From assembly GCF_000006765.1 (NCBI RefSeq), contig NC_002516.2: DNA of 64,000 nucleotides; one strand, given 5' to 3'. Under the pieces are notes generated by a model, which saw nothing but the letters and a program-made list of their open reading frames with translations, searched no databases and was not told where the DNA came from. Both the position numbers and the translations under genes were made by a program. This stretch comes from Pseudomonas aeruginosa PAO1. Its GTDB lineage: Bacteria > Pseudomonadota > Gammaproteobacteria > Pseudomonadales > Pseudomonadaceae. Below are positions 13,920 to 62,968 of the stretch, one piece after another; within the stretch, counting starts at the first letter, position 1; each line of letters starts with the position of its first letter.

Positions 13920-14984
13920 ATGATGAAAAAGCTGTTGCTCGTCGCAACCCTCATGGCAGGAGCCGCCCAGGCCACCGCCGCCGAGAAGCTGTATCTGTTC
14001 AACTGGAACGACTACATCGCCGAGGACACGCTGAAACGCTTCGAGCAGCAATGTGGCTGCGAGCTGGTGCAGGAGTTCTATTCCGGCACCGAGGAAATGA
14101 TGGCCAAGCTGGCCGCCGGGGCCAGCGGCTACGACGTGATCATCCCGACCCAGAACGCGGTCGAGGCGCTGATCCGCAAGGGCGACCTGCTGGAGCTGGA
14201 CAAGAGTCGCCTGGCGAACCTGAGCAACGAGGCCGCGGGCTACCTCGACAAGGATTTCGACAAGGGCAACCGCTATTCCCTGCCCTACGCCTTCACCACC
14301 ACCCTGGTCGGCTACAACAAGACCGAGCTGGACAAGCTGGGCATCGACCCCGCCGACTGGTCGGTGATCTTCGACCCGGCGGTCCTGGAGAAGATCAAGG
14401 GCAGGGTCACGGTGATGGACGACCCGCAGGAACTGTTCGGCGCCGCCCTGAAGTACCTCGGTCACTCCGCCAACGACACCGACCCGCAGCACTGGAAGGA
14501 AGCCCAGGCGCTGATCCTCGCGGCCAAGCCGTACTGGGCCGCGTTCAACTCGTCGAGCTATATCAAGGAGCTGACCCTGGGCAACATCTGGGTCGCCCAT
14601 GGCTACTCCAGCGACATGTACCAGGCCAGGGCCGACGCGGAGGCTGCCGGCCGCGCCTTCAAGGTCGACTTCGCCCTGCCCCGCCAAGGTGCGGTGCTGG
14701 CCATCGACAACATGGTGATCCACAAGGGCTCGAAGAACCCTGACCTGGCCTACCGCTTCATCGACTTCATGCTCGACGGTCGGAACGCTTCCGAGCTGAC
14801 CAACCAGATCGGTACCGGCACGCCCAACGCCGCCGCCCTGCCCTTCATCAAGCCGGAAATCAAGACGCTCGCCGCCCTGTTCCCGGACGCCACCACCCAG
14901 GCCAGGCTGGAGCCGCTGAAGGACCTGAACTCGCGCCAGCGACGCGCCCTGAACAAGCTCTGGACAGAGATCAAGCTGCGCTGA
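13920..14984 (+). CDS. potD: Polyamine ABC transporter periplasmic binding protein
   Basis: Signal peptide; FNWNDYI, GYDVIIP, IDNMVI motifs. Confidence 0.9.
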   Translation: MMKKLLLVATLMAGAAQATAAEKLYLFNWNDYIAEDTLKRFEQQCGCELVQEFYSGTEEMMAKLAAGASGYDVIIPTQNAVEALIRKGDLLELDKSRLANLSNEAAGYLDKDFDKGNRYSLPYAFTTTLVGYNKTELDKLGIDPADWSVIFDPAVLEKIKGRVTVMDDPQELFGAALKYLGHSANDTDPQHWKEAQALILAAKPYWAAFNSSSYIKELTLGNIWVAHGYSSDMYQARADAEAAGRAFKVDFALPRQGAVLAIDNMVIHKGSKNPDLAYRFIDFMLDGRNASELTNQIGTGTPNAAALPFIKPEIKTLAALFPDATTQARLEPLKDLNSRQRRALNKLWTEIKLR

Positions 14985-15002
14985 TCCGCACCGCTATCGA
15001 CG

Positions 15003-15028
15003 AAAGGGCGACCCTCGGTCGCCCTTTT
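15003..15028 (+). terminator. Rho-independent terminator after potD
   Basis: AAAGGGCGACC-CTC-GGTCGCCCTTTT. Confidence 0.85.
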
Positions 15029-15159
15029 GCGTTTCCGTGCCCCGCCCCGAACGCGGTAACATGGCGCCCATTCGCCACCGTCCGTCCCGGGAATGGGCCG
15101 ACGGAAACAATTCGCCCCCTCCATCGGTCGAATCCGCTTATTGCCCCAGGAGATCTTCG

Positions 15160-15570
15160 ATGTCGCGCTTCATGGCCCTTGCCCTTTGTTTCGTCCTGCC
15201 CACCGCCGCCCATGCCGCCTCGCTCAAGGATTTCGAACTGAGCAAGATGCTGGAGAAAGTGGCCAAGGAAAGCAGCGTAGGCACTCCCCGCGCCATCAAC
15301 GAAGACATCCTCGACCAGGGCTACACCGTCGAAGGCAACCAGTTGATCAATCACCTCAGCGTACGCGCCAGCCACGCCGAGCGCATGCGCTCCAACCCGG
15401 ACAGCGTGCGCAGCCAGCTCGGCGATAGCGTGTGCAGCAACACCGGCTATCGCCAGTTGCTCGCCCGCGGCGCGATCCTCACCTACAGCTTCACCGAGTA
15501 CAAGACCAACCAGCCGGTCGCCACCGAACGCTTCGATGCCGGCAGCTGCCGCATCCAGGGCAAGAAGTAA
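15160..15570 (+). CDS. Small exported protein (PA3611-type, quorum-sensing-regulated family)
   Basis: AGGAG RBS; signal peptide ending AHA; two Cys; 136 aa. Confidence 0.75.
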   Translation: MSRFMALALCFVLPTAAHAASLKDFELSKMLEKVAKESSVGTPRAINEDILDQGYTVEGNQLINHLSVRASHAERMRSNPDSVRSQLGDSVCSNTGYRQLLARGAILTYSFTEYKTNQPVATERFDAGSCRIQGKK

Positions 15571-15588
15571 GCGCGCCGCGCGGTCGCC

Positions 15589-15810
15589 ATGCTGGACAAG
15601 CAGCATCTGCTGAAGATCGCCAGGACGCCGATGCCGTTCGGCAAGTACCAGGGACGGATGCTGGTCGACCTGCCGGAGGAGTACCTGCTGTGGTTCTACA
15701 AGAAAGGCTTCCCGCCTGGTGAACTCGGGCGGCTGATGCAGTTGACCCTGGAACTGAAGATCGACGGGCTGGACGGGCTGCTCAAGCCGCTTCGTCCCCC
15801 CGCTCCGTAG
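15589..15810 (+). CDS. DUF3820-type small protein
   Basis: MPFGKYQG...DLPEEYLLWF motif. Confidence 0.8.
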   Translation: MLDKQHLLKIARTPMPFGKYQGRMLVDLPEEYLLWFYKKGFPPGELGRLMQLTLELKIDGLDGLLKPLRPPAP

Positions 15811-15923
15811 GCGAATGACGTCGCCGACGCTATCCGCCGATACCCTGCCCATACCCTGCCTTCACCAGACACCCGCCCCCGTTCGGCAGGGCGAATAACG
15901 CCACAGACGTTATCCGCCGATAC
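15807..15923. repeat. Pair of REP-like palindromes (direct-repeat doublet)
   Basis: GTAG-GCGAATGAC...GCTATCCGCC (15807-15838) and GCAG-GGCGAATAAC...GTTATCCGCC (15886-15918), each followed by GATAC; tandem ATACCCTGCC between them. Confidence 0.75.
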
Positions 15924-15933
15924 GCAGCCGAAC

Positions 15934-18339
15934 TCAGCGCAACAACGCCGGATCGCCCTTGCCGGCCACCGCCGCCGCTTCCTCCGGGGTCAGCAGCGCG
16001 GTGCGCGGGACCTCCATCAAGCGGGCGCAAGCCGCCAGCACGTTGCCCCAGCAGGCGCGGTTGGCGAACTGCATACCCGCCTCGTCGAGGGTGCCGCCGC
16101 GGTTGCGATAGCCGAGTACCGAGGTGCGCCGGGCATCCGGCAGGATCGGCCAAAGATGACCGCGCGCCACTTCCGCGCGCATATGGGTGAGTAGCACGCG
16201 GCGCTCATGGCTATCCGGGAACAGTCGTTCCACCAGCGCCTCGTCGGCCACCGCCTCGACCTCCCAGCGATCGCGCGGCGCGCGGAAGCGTCCCGGCTCC
16301 TGCAGGTAGACCAGCCGGTAGGCCTGCCCGGCCTCGGCCAGGCGCTGCGCGGCGCGGCGCATCTGTTCGAGCTGGTAGCTGCCGTTGGCGATCAGCAGCA
16401 GCGGATCGGAGCCGCAGCGCTCCTCGACCAGGATCGCGCCGTCGCGGGCCAGGCGCTCGGCCTGGACGGCGTCGAAAACCATCGGCCGGTCGCGCTTGGG
16501 GATCACCAGGCAGGCCAGTTGCCCCCGGCTGCGGTAGATCGTCGGTAGCAGCGCCAGGGCGCTGTTGTGATCGGCCGGGAAGAGCACCCGGACCATGTCG
16601 CTCATCTCGCCAAGCAGGGCCTCGCAGAAGGTGGTGTCCTGGTGCGACTGCTGGTTCTTGCCGTTCTCCCAGGTATGCGAAGTAGCGACCAGCGGCCAGC
16701 CCAGCCAGCCGGCCGGACGCCCGACTTCCTTCTGCTGGCGGGCGAAGATCAGGGTCTGGCGCACCGCGCCGAGCATCTTCACGCAGAACGCCTCGTAGCT
16801 GGCAACCAGGTTGAGTCCGCCCTGGTTGGCCAGGCAGGCGGACACCACCGCCTCCTCGTTGAGCGCGGTGATGACCCGACCGCTCACCGATTCCAGTTCG
16901 CTCTCCGGCTCGCTGACCCGATGCTTGAGCGCCTTGAGCACGCCGCCGAGGCGGTTGCTGGCCAATTCGTCGGGATTGCCGACCCGGGCGCGCAGGTCGG
17001 GGTTGGCCTCCACCAGTTCGGTATAGAAGCGGTCCAGCGCGGCCATCGGCGAGCAGGCGTCGTCGCGATAGCGCAGCGGCGGGATGATCGGTTCGATGGG
17101 ATGGCGCAGGGCCAGCGGGTTGTCCCGTTCGAGGGGACGCTCGCCGCGCTGCTCGGCGAACAGCCGGCGGGCCAATTCGAGAGCCTCAGGCTCGACCCAG
17201 AGTTCGTTTGCATGCTGGTTGAACAGTTGCCGGGCCTGTTCGTCGTTATGCGGATTGCCCGGCAGCGGCAGGTTGTGCGCGGCGTTGCTGCCGGCGCCAT
17301 AGAAGCCGAAGCCCTTGACCGTCTCGGCGATGCCGTAGGGAATCGGCAGCGGGTAGCGGAGGATGCCGCTGTTCTTCTCCTGCACGCGCCGCTCCAGGCG
17401 CTGCTCCATCTCCCAGAGCGTACAGACGAAGGCGGCCGGGTCGCGCCCATCGAAGCTGATCGGATCGAAGCCGCATCGGCGCAGATGCAGCTTGAAGCCC
17501 TCCAGCCCCTCATGGGTGCCCAGCTCGGTGCGCTGCTCGATGCGCCGGCCATTGGCGATCATCACCGGCAGCGCCGCCCCGCAATCCTCGGCTCGCCACC
17601 AGCGCGGAATCCAGTCGCTGCCGCGCTGTTCCTCGGCGGCACCATCGGAGAGGAACGCCACCAGGGTCTCGCCGGGCAGCGGCATGTGCGCGTACTGCAA
17701 TTCGGCGAAGCCGAGGTAACCGCCCTCGGCGATACCGCCGGCGGTATGCGGATTCACGTGGCTGCCCAGTGGCGCCGCCGGTGCGCCGTTGGGGGCCTGG
17801 GCGTAGCCGTAGAAGTCCTGCAGCAAGCGGTTCAGCCCTTCCTCGCCGTCGGCATAGGCGCGCTCCTGCTCCGGGTGCAGGTTGCCGGTGAGGACGTTCA
17901 GCGCGTCGATGGCGGCCACGCAATGGCCCTGGCCCATCAGCCAGGCGCGAGTCTTGCCGGTCAGGACGTTGAGTGCCAGATAGCCGGCGTAGGCCGGGAC
18001 CATGTTCAGGGCTCCGCCGGTGTGGCCCTCGGGCTGTGTCTTGAAATCCTCGGCCTGCAACGGCTGGCCGTCCAGGCGGATGCGCCGGGCGTAGGTCATG
18101 TGCACGACGATGCGCAGGGCGCTGGCGGTCAGCCGGTCGAGGGCGCGGAACAGCTGGTAGACGCTGGCCAGGTCCGGTTGCAGCCCGGCTTGGACCAATT
18201 GATGAGCGGTGCGGAACACGGCGGCGCGGGTCTCTGCGCTATGCTGGAGCGGACCATGGCCTTGCAGCCACGCGGCAAACGCCGGCTCGGCCGCCGCATG
18301 GGCAAGCAACTCGTCCTGACTGGGCAGAATCTGACTCAT
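15934..18339 (-). CDS. Divergent phosphoketolase (XFP family, TPP-dependent)
   Basis: ATG 18339, 801 aa; GHTGG, GQGH, EGGYLG, SDGAAEE...NG, PDELASNRL, SYEAF, SHQD motifs. Confidence 0.8.
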   Translation of the reverse strand: MSQILPSQDELLAHAAAEPAFAAWLQGHGPLQHSAETRAAVFRTAHQLVQAGLQPDLASVYQLFRALDRLTASALRIVVHMTYARRIRLDGQPLQAEDFKTQPEGHTGGALNMVPAYAGYLALNVLTGKTRAWLMGQGHCVAAIDALNVLTGNLHPEQERAYADGEEGLNRLLQDFYGYAQAPNGAPAAPLGSHVNPHTAGGIAEGGYLGFAELQYAHMPLPGETLVAFLSDGAAEEQRGSDWIPRWWRAEDCGAALPVMIANGRRIEQRTELGTHEGLEGFKLHLRRCGFDPISFDGRDPAAFVCTLWEMEQRLERRVQEKNSGILRYPLPIPYGIAETVKGFGFYGAGSNAAHNLPLPGNPHNDEQARQLFNQHANELWVEPEALELARRLFAEQRGERPLERDNPLALRHPIEPIIPPLRYRDDACSPMAALDRFYTELVEANPDLRARVGNPDELASNRLGGVLKALKHRVSEPESELESVSGRVITALNEEAVVSACLANQGGLNLVASYEAFCVKMLGAVRQTLIFARQQKEVGRPAGWLGWPLVATSHTWENGKNQQSHQDTTFCEALLGEMSDMVRVLFPADHNSALALLPTIYRSRGQLACLVIPKRDRPMVFDAVQAERLARDGAILVEERCGSDPLLLIANGSYQLEQMRRAAQRLAEAGQAYRLVYLQEPGRFRAPRDRWEVEAVADEALVERLFPDSHERRVLLTHMRAEVARGHLWPILPDARRTSVLGYRNRGGTLDEAGMQFANRACWGNVLAACARLMEVPRTALLTPEEAAAVAGKGDPALLR

Positions 18340-18368
18340 GGTGGGTAGCCTCCCTAGTGGTGCCTTGC

Positions 18369-18409
18369 AGTCTAGGCAGCACACGGCAAAGGGCGCTGAC
18401 CTGCATCAA
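18369..18409 (-). promoter_or_regulatory. ANR/FNR-type box plus -10 for the phosphoketolase gene
   Basis: Minus strand TTGAT-GCAG-GTCAG (18409-18396) and -10 TAGACT (18374-18369); box centre about -41 from predicted start site. Confidence 0.75.
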
Positions 18410-18518
18410 GCTCCCCGCCCCCGATTCGTTCACCCTGGCCCTGTACGAAGGTTCCATGGCATTCCACGATCCCCGAAAGGTATCGGGGTGTCGACAGAGC
18501 TCTGACGGAGGAGGCTCG

Positions 18519-19922
18519 ATGGCATCACTGACGTTTCTAGGCGCCGCCCAGGAGGTCACTGGCTCCTGTTATCTGCTGGAAACCCTCGATGGCGTGAAGG
18601 TCCTGCTCGAATGCGGCATGCGCCAGGGGCGCCGCGAAGCCGACAACGGCAACCGCGCGCCCTTCCCCTTCGATCCCGCGAGCATCGACGCGGTGGTCAT
18701 CTCCCACGCCCACCTGGACCACAGCGGCCTGCTGCCGCGCCTGGCGGCCGAGGGCTTCAAGGGCCCGATCTTCGCCACCGAGGCCACCTGCGAACTGCTG
18801 GAACTCATGCTGCTGGACTCCGCGCACATCCAGGAAAAGGACGCCGAGTGGGAGAACCGCTGGCGCAACCGGATCGGCAAGCCGAGCATCAAGCCGCTGT
18901 ATACCCAGGCCGACACCGAACGCGCGCTCAAGCTGCGCCGGCCGATCAGCCTCGGCAGCACCGTGGCGGTCGCTCGTGGCGTGCGGGTGACCTTTCACAA
19001 CGCCGGGCACATCCTCGGCTCGTCGATCGTCGAAGTGCAATTCCACGACCAGGTGCAACCGCGCCGCCTGGTGTTTTCCGGCGACCTCGGCAACACCTGC
19101 TCGCCGTTGATGCGAGCGCCCTCGCCGCTGAGCCGGGCCGACGTGGTGATGCTCGAATCCACCTACGGCGATCGCGATCACCGCGACAGCAACGACACCC
19201 TGGAGGAACTGGCGGCGATTCTCGACCAGGCGCATCGCGACGGCGGCAACGTGCTGATCCCGTCGTTCGCCGTCGGTCGCACCCAGGACCTGCTCTACTA
19301 CCTCGGCCGCTTCTACCAGGAGGGCCGCCTGCCGCAACAGGCGGTATTCCTCGACAGCCCGATGGCCGCCCGTGCCAATGGCATCTACCTGCGCCACAGC
19401 AACGAGTTCGACGACCGCGACCGCGAGTACATTCGCGGCACCGGCACCACCCGCCTGGAGGAATGGCTGCCGGTGCTGCGCGTCACCCGCAGCGCCGACG
19501 AGTCGATGGCGATCAACCGGATCAAGAGCGGCGCGGTCATCATCGCCGGCAGCGGCATGTGCACCGGCGGCCGTATCGTCCATCACTTCAAGCACAACCT
19601 CTGGCGCCCGGAATGCCATGTGGTATTCCCCGGCTTCCAGGCGCGCGGCACCCTGGGCCGCAACATCGTCGACGGCGCCAGCGCGGTTCGCGTGTTCCAC
19701 CAGCGCATCGCGGTCAAGGCGCAGATCCATACCCTCGGCGGCTTCTCCGCCCACGCCGGGCAATCGCAGCTGCTCGACTGGGTCGGTCACTTCGCCCACC
19801 GTCCAGCGCTATACCTGATACATGGCGAGCGGGAAAAGATGGAAGCGCTGCAGAGCGCGATCCGCGAGCGTCTCGACTGGGATGCCGAGATACCGGAACC
19901 CGGCGAACGCATCGAGATCTGA
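18519..19922 (+). CDS. MBL-fold beta-CASP nuclease (CPSF73/RNase J superfamily)
   Basis: GGAGG RBS; SHAHLDH, NAGHILGS, SGDLG, ESTYGDRDH, FSAHAG motifs. Confidence 0.85.
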   Translation: MASLTFLGAAQEVTGSCYLLETLDGVKVLLECGMRQGRREADNGNRAPFPFDPASIDAVVISHAHLDHSGLLPRLAAEGFKGPIFATEATCELLELMLLDSAHIQEKDAEWENRWRNRIGKPSIKPLYTQADTERALKLRRPISLGSTVAVARGVRVTFHNAGHILGSSIVEVQFHDQVQPRRLVFSGDLGNTCSPLMRAPSPLSRADVVMLESTYGDRDHRDSNDTLEELAAILDQAHRDGGNVLIPSFAVGRTQDLLYYLGRFYQEGRLPQQAVFLDSPMAARANGIYLRHSNEFDDRDREYIRGTGTTRLEEWLPVLRVTRSADESMAINRIKSGAVIIAGSGMCTGGRIVHHFKHNLWRPECHVVFPGFQARGTLGRNIVDGASAVRVFHQRIAVKAQIHTLGGFSAHAGQSQLLDWVGHFAHRPALYLIHGEREKMEALQSAIRERLDWDAEIPEPGERIEI

Positions 19923-20004
19923 GCCGCCGTCCGCAACTGTCACGCAGTCCGTGGCAGTATGCGGATGACCGCCTGTCCAGGGTGGTTGTAGAAGGAGTAT
20001 GCGA

Positions 20005-21075
20005 ATGCCCTACGAAGCCGATGACTATCTTTCCCGGCACTTCCAGACCAGCGGCACCGACCTGGCGCGGAAGGTCGACGAACTGGCGGCCCTTGCGGCT
20101 CCCGGCGACAGCCCCAATCTCGCGCTCTACCGCGAGATGCTCTTCACCGTGACGCGCATGGCCCAGGCCGACCGCAACCGCTGGGACGCCAAGATCATGC
20201 TGCAGACCCTGCGCGAGATGGAGCATGCCTTCAGCGTCCTCGAGCAGTTCAAGCGGCGACGCAAGGTCACCGTGTTCGGCTCGGCGCGCACGCCGGTCGA
20301 ACATCCGGTCTATGCCCTGGCGCGCAAGCTGGGCGAGGAACTGGCCCGCTACGACCTGATGGTGATCACCGGCGCCGGCGGCGGCATCATGGCCGCCGCC
20401 CACGAAGGCGCCGGGCTGGAGAACAGCCTGGGCTTCAACATCACCCTGCCCTTCGAGCAGCACGCCAACCATACGGTGGACGGCAGCGGCAACCTGCTGT
20501 CGTTCCACTTTTTCTTCCTGCGCAAGCTGTTCTTCGTCAAGGAAGCCGACGCCCTGGTGCTCTGCCCCGGCGGCTTCGGCACCCTCGACGAGGCACTGGA
20601 AGTGCTGACCCTGGTACAGACCGGCAAGAGTCCGCTGGTGCCGATCGTGCTGCTCGACCAGCCGGGCGGCCGCTACTGGGAACACGCCCTGGAGTTCATG
20701 CAGGAACAGTTGCTGGAGAATCACTATATCCTGCCGGCCGACATGCGCCTGATGCGCCTGGTGCATTCGGCCGAAGACGCGGTGAAGGAAATCGCCCAGT
20801 TCTACCGCAACTTCCACTCCAGCCGCTGGCTGAAAGGCACTTTCGTGATTCGCCTGAACCACGCCCTGAACGAAGCCGCGCTGGCGCACCTGCACGAACA
20901 CTTCGCCAGCCTCTGCCTGAGCGGCGGCTTCCAGCAGCAGGCCTACAGCGAGCAGGAACAGGACGAACCGGAGTTCCGCAACCTGACCCGCCTCGCCTTC
21001 GTGTTCAACGGGCGCGACCAGGGGCGGCTGCGGGAATTGCTGGACTACATCAACCTGCCGGAAAACTGGGACTGA
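20005..21075 (+). CDS. LOG/SLOG-family nucleotide monophosphate nucleosidase
   Basis: AAGGAG RBS spacing favours ATG 20005; VTVFGSAR, ITGAGGGIM, PGGFGTLDE motifs. Confidence 0.85.
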   Translation: MPYEADDYLSRHFQTSGTDLARKVDELAALAAPGDSPNLALYREMLFTVTRMAQADRNRWDAKIMLQTLREMEHAFSVLEQFKRRRKVTVFGSARTPVEHPVYALARKLGEELARYDLMVITGAGGGIMAAAHEGAGLENSLGFNITLPFEQHANHTVDGSGNLLSFHFFFLRKLFFVKEADALVLCPGGFGTLDEALEVLTLVQTGKSPLVPIVLLDQPGGRYWEHALEFMQEQLLENHYILPADMRLMRLVHSAEDAVKEIAQFYRNFHSSRWLKGTFVIRLNHALNEAALAHLHEHFASLCLSGGFQQQAYSEQEQDEPEFRNLTRLAFVFNGRDQGRLRELLDYINLPENWD

Positions 21076-21096
21076 AGCTGCCGCTCCGGCACGCGC

Positions 21097-22604
<1,508 letters not shown>

Positions 22605-23391: not shown

Positions 23392-24399
23392 ATGAACATC
23401 GCGCCACTCAAGGTCTCTCTGCTCTCCCTCGCCCTGCTCCTCTCCCCCGTTGCCAGCCTCCCCGCCCATGCGGCCTGCACCGCCAACCTGGCCCTGCAAC
23501 CCGCCAGCAGCCTGCCCGCGCTCGGCGGGCGCCTGGTCTACCACAGCTATATGGAGTACGGGGACGGCTCCTCGAACCTCTACCTGCACGATTTCAAGAG
23601 CAAGAGCACCCGCCAGCTCAACCAGCCCGGCTGGAACATCGAGGACCCGATGAATGCGCATTTCTCCCCGGACGGCCGCTACCTGACCTTCATGGGCCGC
23701 CAGAATGGCGCCTGGCACGTGTTCGCCTGGGCCATCGGCGGTACCCAGGCGCCGAGCAACCTGACCGCGGCCATCGGCGGTCGCAACGAGGATCCGAAGT
23801 TCTCCTTCGACGGCCGCCAGGTCGTGCTCAAGCACGAGGGCGACATCCGCCTCGCCACCCTGGTCTTCAATGGCGATGGCAGCGTCGGCGTGAGCGCCTG
23901 GAAAGCCGTGACCGGCGACGGCTGGAGCACCGAGGAGTCGATGCCGTTCCTCACACCCTCAGGCAAGTACGTGGTCTACGCGACAGGAGCCGGCGACAGC
24001 CTGCGGGTGGTGCGCAGGAACCTGGAGAACGGCCAGGTCTGCGCCCTCGCCACCCCGGCCGCGGGGGGCCGCGACTATTACCCGGTGGTACGCGACTACA
24101 CCGCCTACTTCCTCTCGCGTACCCAGCCGGCCGGCAACGACCAGTTGGCCATGGTCGTACCCAACAGCCCGCCCGGCACCCCGGCGATCCTGCCGCTCAA
24201 CCACTGCCAGGGCGACAATTCCGACGCCGCGCCGGTGAACGAGGACTACCTGATCTTCTCCAGCACTTCGTTCGACCCGACCTACAGCCTGCTCCTCGGC
24301 GACATCGCCGCGGCGCGGGTCTGGCGTCTCGACCCGGCGCAGATCAACCTGCCCGACGGTCGGCAGAAGCTCGGCGCCAGCTATACCGCGGCACGCTGA
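23392..24399 (+). CDS. Exported TolB/PD40-like beta-propeller protein, function unknown
   Basis: Signal peptide ending AHA; repeats [30 protein letters not shown]. Confidence 0.7.
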
Positions 24400-24524
24400 A
24401 AGCAGCCCGCACAGGCACGGACCTGAGGGTCCGCGCCGGTTCCGAACGGACCCGACACAGGCCGGCGAATCGGGTTAACATTACCCTCTTTTGCACCGTC
24501 CAAAGCCCGCTTCCGAAGGCCCGT

Positions 24525-27092
24525 ATGACCGACCTCTCCCAGCACACGCCGATGATGCAGCAGTACTTCAAACTGAAGCATCAGCACCCCGACCAATTGA
24601 TGTTCTATCGCATGGGCGACTTCTACGAGCTGTTCTACGAGGACGCGAAGAAGGCCGCCAAACTGCTCGACATCACCCTGACCGCACGCGGCCAGTCCGG
24701 CGGCAAGGCGATCCCGATGGCAGGCATTCCCTTCCATTCGGCGGAGGGCTACCTGGCCAAGCTGGTCAAGCTCGGCGAGTCGGTGGCGATCTGCGAGCAG
24801 ATCGGCGACCCGGCCACCAGCAAGGGGCCGGTGGAGCGCCAGGTGGTGCGGATCATCACCCCCGGCACGGTGAGCGACGAGGCGCTGCTCGACGAACGCC
24901 GCGACAACCTGCTGGCGGCGATCCTCGGCGACGAGCGCCTGTTCGGCCTCGCCGTGCTGGACATCACCAGCGGCCGCTTCAGCGTCCAGGAGATAAAAGG
25001 CTGGGAAACCCTGCTGGCCGAACTGGAGCGCCTCAACCCGGCCGAGCTGCTGATTCCAGACGACTGGCCACAGGGCCTGCCGGCGGAGAAGCGCCGCGGC
25101 GTACGTCGCCGCGCGCCATGGGACTTCGATCGCGACTCGGCGCACAAGAGCCTCTGCCAGCAATTCGGCACCCAGGACCTGAAAGGCTTCGGCTGCCAGA
25201 ACCTGACCCTGGCCATCGGCGCCGCCGGCTGCCTGCTCGCCTACGCCAAGGAAACCCAGCGTACCGCCCTGCCGCACCTGCGCAGCCTGCGCCACGACCG
25301 CCTCGATGACACGGTGATCCTCGACGGTGCCAGCCGCCGCAACCTGGAGCTGGATATCAACCTCAGCGGTGGCCGCGAGAACACCCTGCAATCGGTGGTC
25401 GACCGCTGCCAGACCGCCATGGCCAGCCGCCTGATGAGCCGCTGGCTGAACCGTCCGTTGCGTGACCGCGCGGTACTGGAAGCCCGCCAGGAGTCCATCG
25501 CCTGCCTGCTGGAACGCTACCGCTTCGAGAACCTGCAACCGCAGCTCAAGGAAATCGGCGACCTCGAACGCATCCTCGCCCGCATCGGCCTGCGCAACGC
25601 CCGCCCTCGCGACCTGGCGCGCCTGCGCGACGCGCTGGCGGCGCTGCCGGACCTGCAGAACGCCATGACCGAACTGGAAGCGCCGCACCTGCAGGCGCTG
25701 GCCACCACCATCGGCACCTATCCCGAACTCGCCGAACTGCTGGCCAAGGCGATCATCGACAACCCGCCAGCGGTGATCCGCGACGGTGGCGTGATCAAGA
25801 CCGGCTATGACGCCGAGCTGGACGAGCTGCAGGCGCTGAGCGAAAACGCCGGGCAATTCCTGATGGACCTGGAAGCGCGCGAGAAGGCCCGCACCGGCCT
25901 GCCCAACCTGAAGGTCGGCTACAACCGCATCCATGGCTACTTCATCGAGCTGCCACGGGTGCAGGCCGAACAGGCGCCGGCCGACTACATCCGCCGGCAG
26001 ACCCTGAAAGGCGCCGAGCGCTTCATCACGCCGGAACTGAAGGCCTTCGAGGACAAGGCGCTGTCGGCCCAGAGCCGCGCCCTGGCCCGCGAGAAGGCGC
26101 TCTACGAAGAGCTGCTGGAACGCCTGATCGGCCACCTCGCTCCGCTCCAGGACAGCGCCTCGGCGCTGGCGGAACTGGACGTGCTGGCGAATCTCGCCGA
26201 ACGCGCGCTGAACCTCGACCTGAATCGCCCGCGGTTCGTCGAACACACCTGCCTGCACATCGAGCAGGGCCGCCATCCGGTGGTCGAGCAGGTGCTGGAG
26301 ACACCGTTCGTGGCCAACGACCTGGCGCTGGATGCCGACACCCGGATGCTGGTGATCACCGGTCCGAACATGGGCGGTAAATCCACCTACATGCGGCAAA
26401 CCGCGCTGATCGTGCTGCTTGCGCACATCGGCAGCTTCGTTCCGGCTGCACGCTGCGAGCTGTCCCTGGTGGACCGCATCTTCACCCGCATCGGCTCGTC
26501 CGACGACCTTGCCGGCGGCCGCTCGACCTTCATGGTGGAGATGAGCGAAACCGCCAACATCCTGCACAACGCCACCGACAAGAGCCTGGTGCTGATGGAT
26601 GAGGTCGGCCGCGGCACCAGCACCTTCGACGGCCTGTCGCTGGCCTGGGCAGCGGCCGAGGACCTGGCCCGGACTCGCGCCTTCACCCTGTTCGCCACCC
26701 ACTATTTCGAACTGACCGTACTGCCGGAAAGCCAGCCCGCGGTAGCCAACGTGCACCTGAACGCGACCGAGCACAATGAACGCATCGTGTTCCTGCACCA
26801 TGTACTGCCGGGACCGGCGAGCCAGAGCTACGGCCTCGCGGTGGCCCAGTTGGCCGGCGTGCCGGCCCCGGTAATCCAGCGCGCCCGCGAACACCTCAAG
26901 CGCCTGGAAACCACCAGCCTGCCGCACGAGATGCCGAGCCAGCAGAGCGGCAAGCCCGCCTCGCCGATGCAGAGCGACCTGTTCGCCAGCCTGCCGCACC
27001 CGGTGATCGATGAATTGTCGAGGATCAATCCCGACGATATCAGCCCGCGGCAAGCTCTCGATCTGTTATATGCATGGAAGATGCGGGTCTGA
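24525..27092 (+). CDS. mutS: DNA mismatch repair protein MutS, intact (855 aa)
   Basis: [25 protein letters not shown] motifs. Confidence 0.99.
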
Positions 27093-61670: not shown

Positions 61671-62228
61671 TCAGACAGCCATGAGGTCCGCTTCTTTGGC
61701 TTCCAGTGCCTTCTCGATCTCACCGATGAACTTGTCGGTCAGCTTCTGCACGTCGTCGCCGGCGCGGCGCTCTTCGTCCTCGCTGATTTCCTTTTCCTTC
61801 TGCAGGTCCTTCAACTGGGCCAGCGCATCGCGACGGATGTTGCGCACGGAAACCCGCGCCTGCTCGGCCTCGGCACGCGCCTGCTTGGTGTAGCCCTTGC
61901 GGGTCTCCTCGGTCAGGGCCGGCATCGGTACGCGGATGGTGGTGCCGGCGGTGGCCGGGTTGAGCCCCAGGTCGGAGGTCATGATGGCCTTCTCGACCGC
62001 CTGGATCATGCTCTTGTCGAACACGGCCAGGGCCAGGGTACGGGAGTCTTCCACGGTGACGTTGGCGACCTGGCGCAGCGGCGTATCGGCCCCGTAATAG
62101 GAAACCATCACGCTATCCAGGATGCTCGGATGCGCGCGACCGGTACGAATCTTCGCGAAGGCATGGCCCAGCGCTTCCAGGGTCTTGCCCATGCGCTCCT
62201 GCGCTTCCTTCTTGATCTCGTTGATCAT
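61671..62228 (-). CDS. frr: Ribosome recycling factor
   Basis: [13 protein letters not shown] motifs; 185 aa. Confidence 0.98.
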
Positions 62229-62230
62229 TC

Positions 62231-62968
62231 TCAACCCTCCTCGATCAGGGTGCCTTCGGCACCACCAACAACAATATTCAGCAATGCGCCCGGCTTGTTC
62301 ATGTTGAACACCCGCAGCGGCATGTTCTGGTCACGGCACAGGCAGATGGCGGTCAGGTCCATCACGCCGAGCTTGCGGTCGAGCACTTCATCATAGGTCA
62401 GGCGCTCGAACTTCTCGGCATTCGGGTCCTTGAACGGGTCGGCAGTGTACACGCCATCGACCTTGGTAGCCTTAAGGACCACGTCGGCGTCGATCTCGAT
62501 GGCGCGCAGGCAAGCCGCCGAGTCGGTGGTGAAGAACGGGTTGCCGGTACCGGCGGAGAAGATCACCACCTCGCCACCGCCGAGGTGGCGCATGGCCTTG
62601 CGGCGGTCGTAGTGGTCGGTCACACCGACCATGGAGATCGCCGACATCACCAGCGCGGGGATGTTCGAGCGCTCCAGCGCATCGCGCATCGCCAGGCCGT
62701 TCATCACGGTGGCCAGCATCCCCATGTGGTCGCCGGTCACCCGGTCCATGCCGGCCGCGGACAGGGCCGCGCCGCGGAACAGGTTGCCGCCGCCGATGAC
62801 CAGGCCGACCTGCACGCCGATCCCGACCAACTGGCCGATTTCCAGCGCCATGCGGTCCAGCACCTTGGGATCAATGCCGAACTCCTCCGAGCCCATCAGG
62901 GCTTCGCCGCTCAACTTTAGAAGAATGCGTTTATAGCGAGGTTGACGAGCGCTCAGTTGCTGAGCCAT
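62231..62968 (-). CDS. pyrH: Uridylate kinase
   Basis: [24 protein letters not shown] motifs. Confidence 0.98.

Follow-up and report, generated by a model that had tools for sequence, protein, structure and literature searches.

From what do Pseudomonas aeruginosa and other bacteria that live by respiration draw their maintenance energy in anoxic niches of biofilms and infections, where neither fermentable substrates nor nitrate are on offer? This long-standing question is raised by a locus of P. aeruginosa PAO1 at which a phosphoketolase-like (PK-like) gene, a beta-CASP nuclease gene and a LOG gene lie around one Anr box. The locus was analysed within a stretch of 64,000 nucleotides (assembly GCF_000006765.1, contig NC_002516.2), called the window throughout; all positions refer to it. 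The region is what we take to be PA3610–PA3620 of the PAO1 map, and the genes under study are therefore named PA3613, PA3614 and PA3615. A first-pass annotation had proposed that the three proteins would let an oxygen-starved cell burn its own RNA for ATP, an interpretation that is supported in part, and we give a probability of about 45% to the full RNA-to-ATP chain operating as proposed in P. aeruginosa. Comparisons across bacteria argue for a functional module leading from nucleotides (plausibly RNA-derived) through pentose phosphate to acetyl phosphate and ATP, because the adjacency of PK-like and beta-CASP genes is deep, an enzyme cleaving nucleoside 5'-monophosphates (NMPs) recurs beside them, and acetate kinase is repeatedly fused in. 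The features of the locus are:

15934..18339, minus strand: PA3613, gene for a divergent XFP-like thiamine-diphosphate (ThDP) enzyme, 801 aa; Pfam XFP and XFP_N.
18369..18374, minus strand: −10-like hexamer TAGACT for the PK-like gene, in the conserved CTAGACT block, 21 nt downstream of the Anr box.
18396..18409, no strand assigned: Anr (FNR-type) box CTGACCTGCATCAA, common to both divergent genes; motif match and published box.
18519..19922, plus strand: PA3614, gene for a predicted beta-CASP metallo-beta-lactamase ribonuclease (RNase) of the TTHA0252/CPSF73-like type, 467 aa; Pfam Beta-Casp, RMMBL and Lactamase_B.
19937..19957, plus strand: CTGTCAC-N7-GTGGCAG element between the beta-CASP and LOG genes, kept by loci of the P. 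aeruginosa group; it may serve the LOG gene as promoter or operator.
20005..21075, plus strand: PA3615, gene for a type-II LOG protein, 356 aa; Pfam Lysine_decarbox and LDcluster4.

All three genes and the Anr-type box named by the first-pass annotation are present, its family assignments (XFP, beta-CASP, LOG) are correct, and the active-site residues look intact by alignment. Its reading of the beta-CASP gene as an RNase holds at family level, given the RMMBL domain and TTHA0252 as closest solved relative; the nuclease is real, though it lies in the frame of the open reading frame (ORF) 18357–19922 and not in that of ORF 18611–20152.

In the proposed route, PA3614, a predicted cytoplasmic 5'→3' exo/endo-ribonuclease, would degrade RNA to 5'-NMPs; these would be cleaved to base and ribose 5-phosphate, in Pseudomonas by the type-II LOG PA3615 and in most other lineages by an AMP-phosphorylase-like (AMPpase-like) protein with a partner resembling phosphoribosyl-pyrophosphate (PRPP) synthetase (Prs-like); housekeeping isomerase and epimerase would turn ribose 5-phosphate into xylulose 5-phosphate; PA3613 would split the latter into acetyl phosphate and glyceraldehyde 3-phosphate; and acetate kinase, encoded elsewhere in P. 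aeruginosa and within the cluster in other bacteria, would yield ATP. The passage from ribose 5-phosphate through xylulose 5-phosphate to acetyl phosphate and glyceraldehyde 3-phosphate is that of pentose heterofermentation, and the chemistry of the route is sound, no NAD(P)H being produced. We infer each enzymatic step, RNA as the source of the nucleotides, and co-expression of the LOG gene. If the route is real, the cell's own RNA and nucleotide pool would serve as an endogenous fuel, worth up to about 3 ATP per ribose by stoichiometric estimate and free of NAD(P)H, and the presence of an Anr-controlled phosphoketolase beside an RNase would be explained. That RNA turnover and the non-oxidative pentose pathway are of importance in anaerobic maintenance is suggested, circumstantially, by a mutant screen in which RNase R and transaldolase mutants lost viability (PMC13622516).

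PA3613 exceeds the Pfam cut-offs for XFP (151 bits) and for XFP_N (52 bits), the latter match being partial and covering profile positions 10–243 of 364; no XFP_C domain was detected in it by Pfam. Its best NCBIfam score, 134.8 bits, lies below the cut-off of 777, and by these scores the protein belongs to a divergent subfamily of the phosphoketolases and is not an equivalog. Phosphoketolases in PDB match it at E values of 1e-25 to 1e-21 (64–94 bits, phmmer). In alignment with these, including the enzymes of Bifidobacterium longum and Lactococcus lactis, the Mg-ThDP motif GDG…NG is represented by SDG(232)…NG(263); the N1'-activating glutamate E479 (B. longum numbering, also below) by E495; and H64, H97, H142, H320, Y501, N549 and H553, residues with roles known from the structural literature, by H106, H139, H194, H355, Y515, N562 and H566. 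The full catalytic set, including the Mg-ThDP motif and E479, is kept in 163 of 169 PK-like homologues. Since the motif, the activating glutamate and the catalytic residues all align, PA3613 is apparently a competent, if divergent, phosphoketolase-type enzyme. Its clade is small (775 representatives at 50% clustering, E ≤ 0.001). NCBI records often label the protein 'xylulose 5-phosphate 3-epimerase', which clashes with its phosphoketolase-family domains and catalytic residues and looks like a misnomer. In worm, fly, cell and acute mouse-lung models a transposon mutant of PA3613 showed no attenuation (PMC4676916), a result that is neutral on a role in anoxic maintenance, neither supporting nor refuting it.

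PA3614 is matched by Pfam Beta-Casp (129 bits), RMMBL (70 bits) and Lactamase_B, and over residues 7–448 it aligns with TTHA0252 of Thermus thermophilus at E 1e-94, with the motifs HAHLDH (HxHxDH), AGH, SGDLG, ESTYGDR, SAHAGQ and IHGE in register. TTHA0252, a CPSF73/aCPSF2-like enzyme and the nearest relative with a solved structure, has 5'→3' exoribonuclease activity and probably acts as an endonuclease too (PMC4229858), which supports the prediction of PA3614 as an RNA-type nuclease of the TTHA0252 kind. Relative to TTHA0252, PA3614 carries a 16-residue insertion, EKDAEWENRWRNRIGKPSIK, at about residues 107–122, and its C-terminus is longer.

PA3615 is matched by Pfam Lysine_decarbox (105 bits) and, slightly below the cut-off of 96.35, by TIGR00730 (94.4 bits). 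Type-II LOGs in PDB match it at E 1e-37 to 1e-31 and are its best Foldseek matches; it is about 38% identical to 5wq3, 5zi9, 1wek and 9us2, and its segments TGAGGGIMAA and PGGFGTLDE align with 5wq3 and 5zi9 at the LOG motifs GGGxGxM and PGGxGTxxE. With only 32 bits against the PpnN model NF038390 (cut-off 450), and with no PpnN match for its C-terminal domain, it is by profile comparison not a PpnN. That C-terminal domain is an additional alpha/beta domain of about 90–95 aa (window 20788-21072), modelled with a predicted local distance difference test score (pLDDT) of 91. Every Pseudomonadaceae orthologue has it, and the 288-aa LOG of one metagenomic locus, L126, lacks it; a Foldseek search with it against PDB gave no significant match, the best being ACT-like (E 0.13). 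It may be a regulatory or interaction module.

In the window, 179 bp separate the divergent PK-like and beta-CASP genes, and the Anr box CTGACCTGCATCAA is centred 63 nt from the ATG of the former and 116 nt from that of the latter. The box has two mismatches to the Anr consensus TTGAT-N4-ATCAA. Such a motif is weak evidence when taken alone, because the window holds 29 FNR-box matches with ≤2 mismatches (7 expected), mostly in coding sequence. At related loci a box with ≤2 mismatches stands at the conserved position in 72 of 79 cases; it has the form TTGAT-N4-(A/G)TCAG and sits roughly midway in a spacer of some 125 bp, at distances of 58–69 nt to the ATG of the PK-like gene and 57–71 nt to that of the beta-CASP gene. 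In an alignment of 75 distinct spacers, the box and, second to it, the element CTAGACT, 21 nt away on the PK-like side, are the best-conserved blocks. In a class II promoter the FNR box lies about 41.5 nt upstream of the transcription start; the spacing of box and −10-like hexamer fits such a promoter for the PK-like gene, and the position of the box fits a shared, bidirectionally placed activator site for the divergent beta-CASP gene as well, the transcription starts of the pair being positions that we infer. A sigma-70 scan of 15500–21300 returned no promoter-like site. A separate FNR-like site with one mismatch, TTGATCATTCTCAA (62221-62234), lies in coding sequence at the junction of the minus-strand ORFs 61671–62234 and 62231–62968, and is most likely a chance match.

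Tribelli et al. 2019 give the identical sequence, CTGACCTGCATCAA, as the Anr box of both genes, 57 nt upstream of PA3613 and 110 nt upstream of PA3614 (PMC6588701 supplement). Up-regulation of the two genes at low oxygen or by Anr is tabulated in PMC8575079, with Alvarez-Ortega & Harwood 2007, Trunk et al. 2010 and Tribelli et al. 2019 as its sources. One Anr box most likely activates both genes upon oxygen depletion. The promoter had been called ANR-type from the sequence alone, with the caveat that parts of the proposal might already be reported; the box is indeed published for both genes besides being conserved at related loci, and their membership of the Anr regulon is likewise in the literature.

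A scan of the genome collection gave matches only in Pseudomonadaceae, at ≥73% identity, and yielded 80 loci, 75 of them informative and five cut by contig ends. In all 75 informative loci the PK-like gene is divergent from the beta-CASP gene, which is followed by the LOG gene. These genes adjoin recX/recA in most Pseudomonas genomes; in Thiopseudomonas, Denitrificimonas, Serpens and P. flexibilis the trio is not near recA. In Thiopseudomonas and Denitrificimonas the beta-CASP–LOG spacer measures 12 bp and contains a ribosome-binding site, so that the two genes form an operon there. In Denitrificimonas caeni (L055, 1692-9893) the trio stands beside pyruvate:ferredoxin/flavodoxin oxidoreductase and dihydroorotate-dehydrogenase-like genes, which is another anaerobic-metabolism neighbourhood.

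More distant homologues were collected by exact-protein look-ups (nine contexts) and by a metagenome scan (80 loci, L090-L169, PK-like proteins 50–55% identical to PA3613). Within 3 kb of the 80 metagenome PK-like genes, beta-CASP genes were found at 52 loci, AMPpase-like genes at 43, Prs-like genes (PRK07199-type ribose-phosphate diphosphokinase) at 40 and acetate kinase genes at 13; most commonly the genes share one strand, in the order Prs-like, PK-like, beta-CASP, AMPpase-like, and are separated by 3–50 bp. Among the looked-up contexts, L084 (8001-14139) holds an overlapping operon PK-like → beta-CASP → AMPpase-like → Prs-like; L082 and L086 hold PK-like, AMPpase-like and Prs-like genes with a convergent beta-CASP gene; L088 reads beta-CASP → PK-like → DksA/TraR-like → P-type ATPase; and in L087 and L089 acetate kinase overlaps the PK-like start. 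In L107 and L126 beta-CASP → LOG (overlapping at stop and start), LpxR, cytochrome c', AckA and PK-like genes all lie on one strand. PK-like and beta-CASP genes remain neighbours even where PK-like identity has fallen to about 35%, whether they are divergent, convergent or co-directional, and the coupling of acetate kinase to the PK-like gene in several lineages points to acetyl phosphate as the product.

The AMPpase-like protein has the AMP phosphorylase of Thermococcus kodakarensis as best PDB match (4ga5, E 3.5e-95), scores above the cut-off of TIGR02645 and reaches 468–477 bits against TIGR03327 (cut-off 535); by these matches it is of the archaeal type. The predicted NMP-cleaving partner is thus of two unrelated kinds, LOG or AMPpase-like. 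Side observations on these clusters are the following. The four-gene operon recurs in L084 and about 40 of the metagenome loci, often with acetate kinase within 6 kb. In L088 (2915-4090) the PK-like gene is followed by genes for a DksA/TraR-type zinc-finger protein and a cation P-type ATPase; the low-oxygen set tabulated for P. aeruginosa includes the TraR-like PA4577 and a P-type ATPase (PMC8575079). The cluster in L126 (2635-13713) has genes for a DUF3363/MobA-like relaxase and an S26 signal peptidase as neighbours, and may be carried by a mobile element.

Several observations weigh against the full chain. P. alcaligenes and P. mendocina, the two genomes examined for a LOG gene apart from the pair, carry one at the same site (77–80% identity, equal length, flanked by the QSregVF gene on one side and by recX or nadA on the other) without PK-like or beta-CASP genes; no remnants of the pair were found in either, and the QSregVF gene still adjoins the LOG gene in species that lack the pair. 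The beta-CASP–LOG spacer varies from 12 to 571 bp across loci. Loci of the P. aeruginosa group (L001, L004, L032) keep a CTGTCAC-N7-GTG(G/T)CAG-like element ahead of the LOG gene, and because CTGTCAC is kept about 60 nt upstream of the LOG gene in P. alcaligenes (L172), where no beta-CASP gene precedes it, a promoter or operator belonging to the LOG gene itself is suggested. A reading of the CTGTCAC element as a LexA box was rejected, the CTG…CAG spacing being wrong. Since the LOG gene persists without the pair in these two species, the variable hypoxia unit of Pseudomonas is the divergent PK-like/beta-CASP pair and not the trio; the LOG gene is a backbone neighbour, probably with its own promoter. 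PA3615 is absent from the low-oxygen and Anr genes listed in PMC8575079 and in the supplement of PMC6588701, and none of PA3613, PA3614 and PA3615 is named among the validated hits in the accessible part of the anaerobic-maintenance screen (PMC13622516). The first-pass annotation had treated the three genes as one hypoxia-induced unit: the synteny of the trio stands (75 of 75 loci), as does hypoxic induction of PA3613 and PA3614 (PMC8575079), and it is the LOG gene, which is separable and missing from the lists, that does not fit.

The distant loci add to the points on that side. No such partners accompany the PK-like gene in three of the nine looked-up contexts, one of which stands beside a glycogen-type enzyme, and no partner genes lie nearby in 20 of the 80 metagenome loci; because of these loci and the glycogen-type neighbour, the carbon source may differ between lineages. 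FNR-like boxes with ≤1 mismatch precede 8 of 74 distant operons against 1.5% of background windows, which is an enrichment, though several of the loci are related and the operon starts are estimated. The deep-branching PK-like proteins of L082 (8001-10352), L085 (8001-10370), L086 (8001-10214) and L088 (574-2817), 35–41% identical, have lost most catalytic histidines and, in three of them, the ThDP-Mg ligands too, and look like pseudo-phosphoketolases. Three of the four (L082, L086, L088) are still beside a beta-CASP gene, and L082 and L086 also beside AMPpase-like and Prs-like genes; L085 has none of these. As catalytically dead homologues are kept in the cluster, the clustering cannot rest only on the formation of acetyl phosphate; the PK-like/beta-CASP association may, as this suggests, exceed metabolite flow, for example by way of a protein complex.

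What else could the locus be? PA3613 might be a hypoxic phosphoketolase acting on central sugar phosphates from any carbon source, an NAD(P)H-free bypass relieving reductive stress, with PA3614 and PA3615 serving separately in RNA turnover and nucleotide-pool control during growth arrest, so that a regulator and a neighbourhood are shared and not a pathway. We consider this possible though unlikely. The separable LOG gene of P. alcaligenes and P. mendocina suits it, as do the quarter of metagenome PK-like loci without nucleotide-related neighbours, the homologue beside a glycogen-type enzyme, and the emphasis on reductive stress and not RNA in the title of Horak et al. 2026; and loss of TTHA0252 alters global mRNA levels (PMC4229858), as a general RNase role would have it. 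Co-regulation alone would hardly account, however, for an adjacency that persists to about 35% identity in every gene order, usually with an NMP-cleaving enzyme.

A more improbable alternative is that the PK-like protein has a substrate or chemistry other than that of Xfp (a pentose bisphosphate or a PRPP-derived sugar supplied by the AMPpase-like and Prs-like proteins), or is in part a non-catalytic subunit of a nuclease or nucleotide-processing complex. The NCBIfam phosphoketolase models give PA3613 only 72–135 bits against cut-offs of 777–1518, Pfam detects no XFP_C, and beside the catalytic N549 and H553 the substitutions R545E, Q546N and H548K are found; the low scores and the changes at Q546 and H548 make the substrate of PA3613 uncertain and so count against the RNA-to-ATP chain as well. 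The catalytically dead homologues in the cluster, and partners that resemble AMP phosphorylase, the maker of ribose 1,5-bisphosphate, point the same way. Set against these are the catalytic histidines, E479, Y501 and N549, which serve dehydration and phosphorolysis and are kept in 163 of 169 homologues; the translational coupling of acetate kinase in several lineages, which speaks for acetyl phosphate as product; and the Pseudomonas partner, a LOG, which by analogy would yield plain ribose 5-phosphate. That the adjacency is functionally meaningless, or that the nuclease serves DNA repair, is very improbable. The locus abuts recX, recA, cinA and, to judge by position, mutS, recX/recA being neighbours in most Pseudomonas genomes, and some beta-CASP enzymes (SNM1, Artemis) do act on DNA; PA3614, however, has the RNA-specificity domain RMMBL and an RNase as closest solved relative, and the genes also stand together away from recA and in unrelated metagenomic contexts. 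A defence-system reading was rejected, none of the three proteins matching a defence-system model in PADLOC.

The gene models on which these comparisons rest were set as follows. The PK-like ORF spans 15934–18384 (minus strand), and its start was placed at the ATG at 18339, which GGGAGG precedes; the beta-CASP gene lies in the frame of ORF 18357–19922 (plus strand), with its start at the ATG at 18519, preceded by GGAGGAGG; and for the LOG ORF, 19999/20005–21075 (plus strand), the second ATG is the start used by homologues. The PK-like protein of the window is 100% identical to a P. aeruginosa cluster (n=1504 sequences). The beta-CASP/LOG spacer of the window is about 80 bp, and a scan gave no convincing terminator between the two genes. 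The 513-aa ORF 18611–20152 was rejected as the nuclease, since it has no Pfam match and the wrong phase of third-position G+C (GC3), and it reads as a wrong-frame artefact of the high G+C content (61–69% in the window). Neighbouring genes encode a PotD-like binding protein, a QSregVF protein, a 73-aa ORF, recX, recA and cinA; the QSregVF-family gene (PF13652, 15037–15570) and the 73-aa ORF (15589–15810) are convergent to the PK-like gene, and beyond cinA an 890-aa minus-strand ORF (24381–27053) takes the position occupied by mutS in P. alcaligenes. A 293-aa ORF (14971–15852) on the strand opposite the QSregVF gene has no family match and is probably spurious.

A P. aeruginosa phosphoketolase is reportedly, by the title of Horak et al. 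2026 (doi 10.1111/mmi.70059), a support of anaerobic survival. To our knowledge, P. aeruginosa has no other phosphoketolase-family gene, and for this reason that report very probably concerns PA3613. The Anr box, the low-oxygen induction of PA3613 and PA3614 and, by title, the survival role of a phosphoketolase are therefore not new; the new evidence is comparative and consists of the conservation of the spacer, the catalytic residues and the clustering in distant lineages. In the literature covered, which is incomplete, no link of the PA3613 phosphoketolase to RNase, LOG or AMPpase-like genes was found. The reach extends beyond Pseudomonas, as many uncultured bacteria join the RNase/PK-like pair to an archaeal-type AMPpase-like gene and acetate kinase, so that the proposal can be put to the test in several systems. 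A further question is what part the PRPP-synthetase-like partner and the catalytically dead homologues play.

Among known systems, the Xfp/XFPK phosphoketolases of Bifidobacterium, Lactococcus and cyanobacteria share with PA3613 the ThDP fold, XFP_N and XFP, the D…N Mg-ThDP motif and the catalytic residues; PA3613 differs in its low similarity to them, its separate small clade, the lack of an XFP_C domain detectable by Pfam, Anr control in a respiratory bacterium, and RNase and nucleotide-cleaving neighbours instead of sugar-uptake genes. As in the phosphoketolase pathway with acetate kinase, homologues of PA3613 are coupled to acetate kinase. PA3614 is like TTHA0252 in domain order and metal-binding motifs and unlike it in the insertion, the longer C-terminus, Anr regulation and the pairing with a PK-like gene. 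Type-II LOG and PpnN enzymes cleave NMPs to base and ribose 5-phosphate. PA3615 has their core fold and motifs and stands nearest to the type-II LOGs, from which it differs by the extra C-terminal domain, its score being far under the PpnN cut-off.

As to regulation and energetics, PA3613 and PA3614 are published members of the Anr regulon, and their promoter geometry fits class II. In the anoxic survival of P. aeruginosa ATP is supplied by AckA-Pta (PMC13492107); the acetyl phosphate proposed here would come from nucleotide pentose phosphate and not from pyruvate or acetyl-CoA. 'Lysine decarboxylase' is a label often given to LOG-family genes. The hypoxia-induced lxa locus of Burkholderia cenocepacia contains acetate kinase, a 'lysine decarboxylase' gene and pentose-turnover genes, and the main text of its description mentions no phosphoketolase, nuclease or lactamase (PMC3721108); it resembles the present clusters in acetate kinase and the candidate LOG gene and differs in organisation.

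The archaeal NMP shunt (AMP phosphorylase, ribose-1,5-bisphosphate isomerase, RuBisCO) likewise leads from NMPs to base and phosphorylated ribose and on to central carbon metabolism. Operons related to the present locus hold an AMPpase-like gene, where the window has LOG instead, and carry PK-like and Prs-like genes in place of isomerase and RuBisCO, neither of which turned up in the tBLASTn survey or, at the six loci read closely, among the genes with Pfam annotation, no search having been aimed at them. We tentatively suggest, as a possibility that we hold to be doubtful, that the PK-like/beta-CASP pair is the Pseudomonas form of a widespread, undescribed nucleotide-to-acetyl-phosphate module (RNase, LOG or AMPpase-like plus Prs-like protein, divergent phosphoketolase and acetate kinase), which in bacteria would correspond to the archaeal shunt but lead to substrate-level ATP and not to RuBisCO, with its proteins perhaps complexed, as the retention of dead phosphoketolase homologues in the same cluster would lead one to think.

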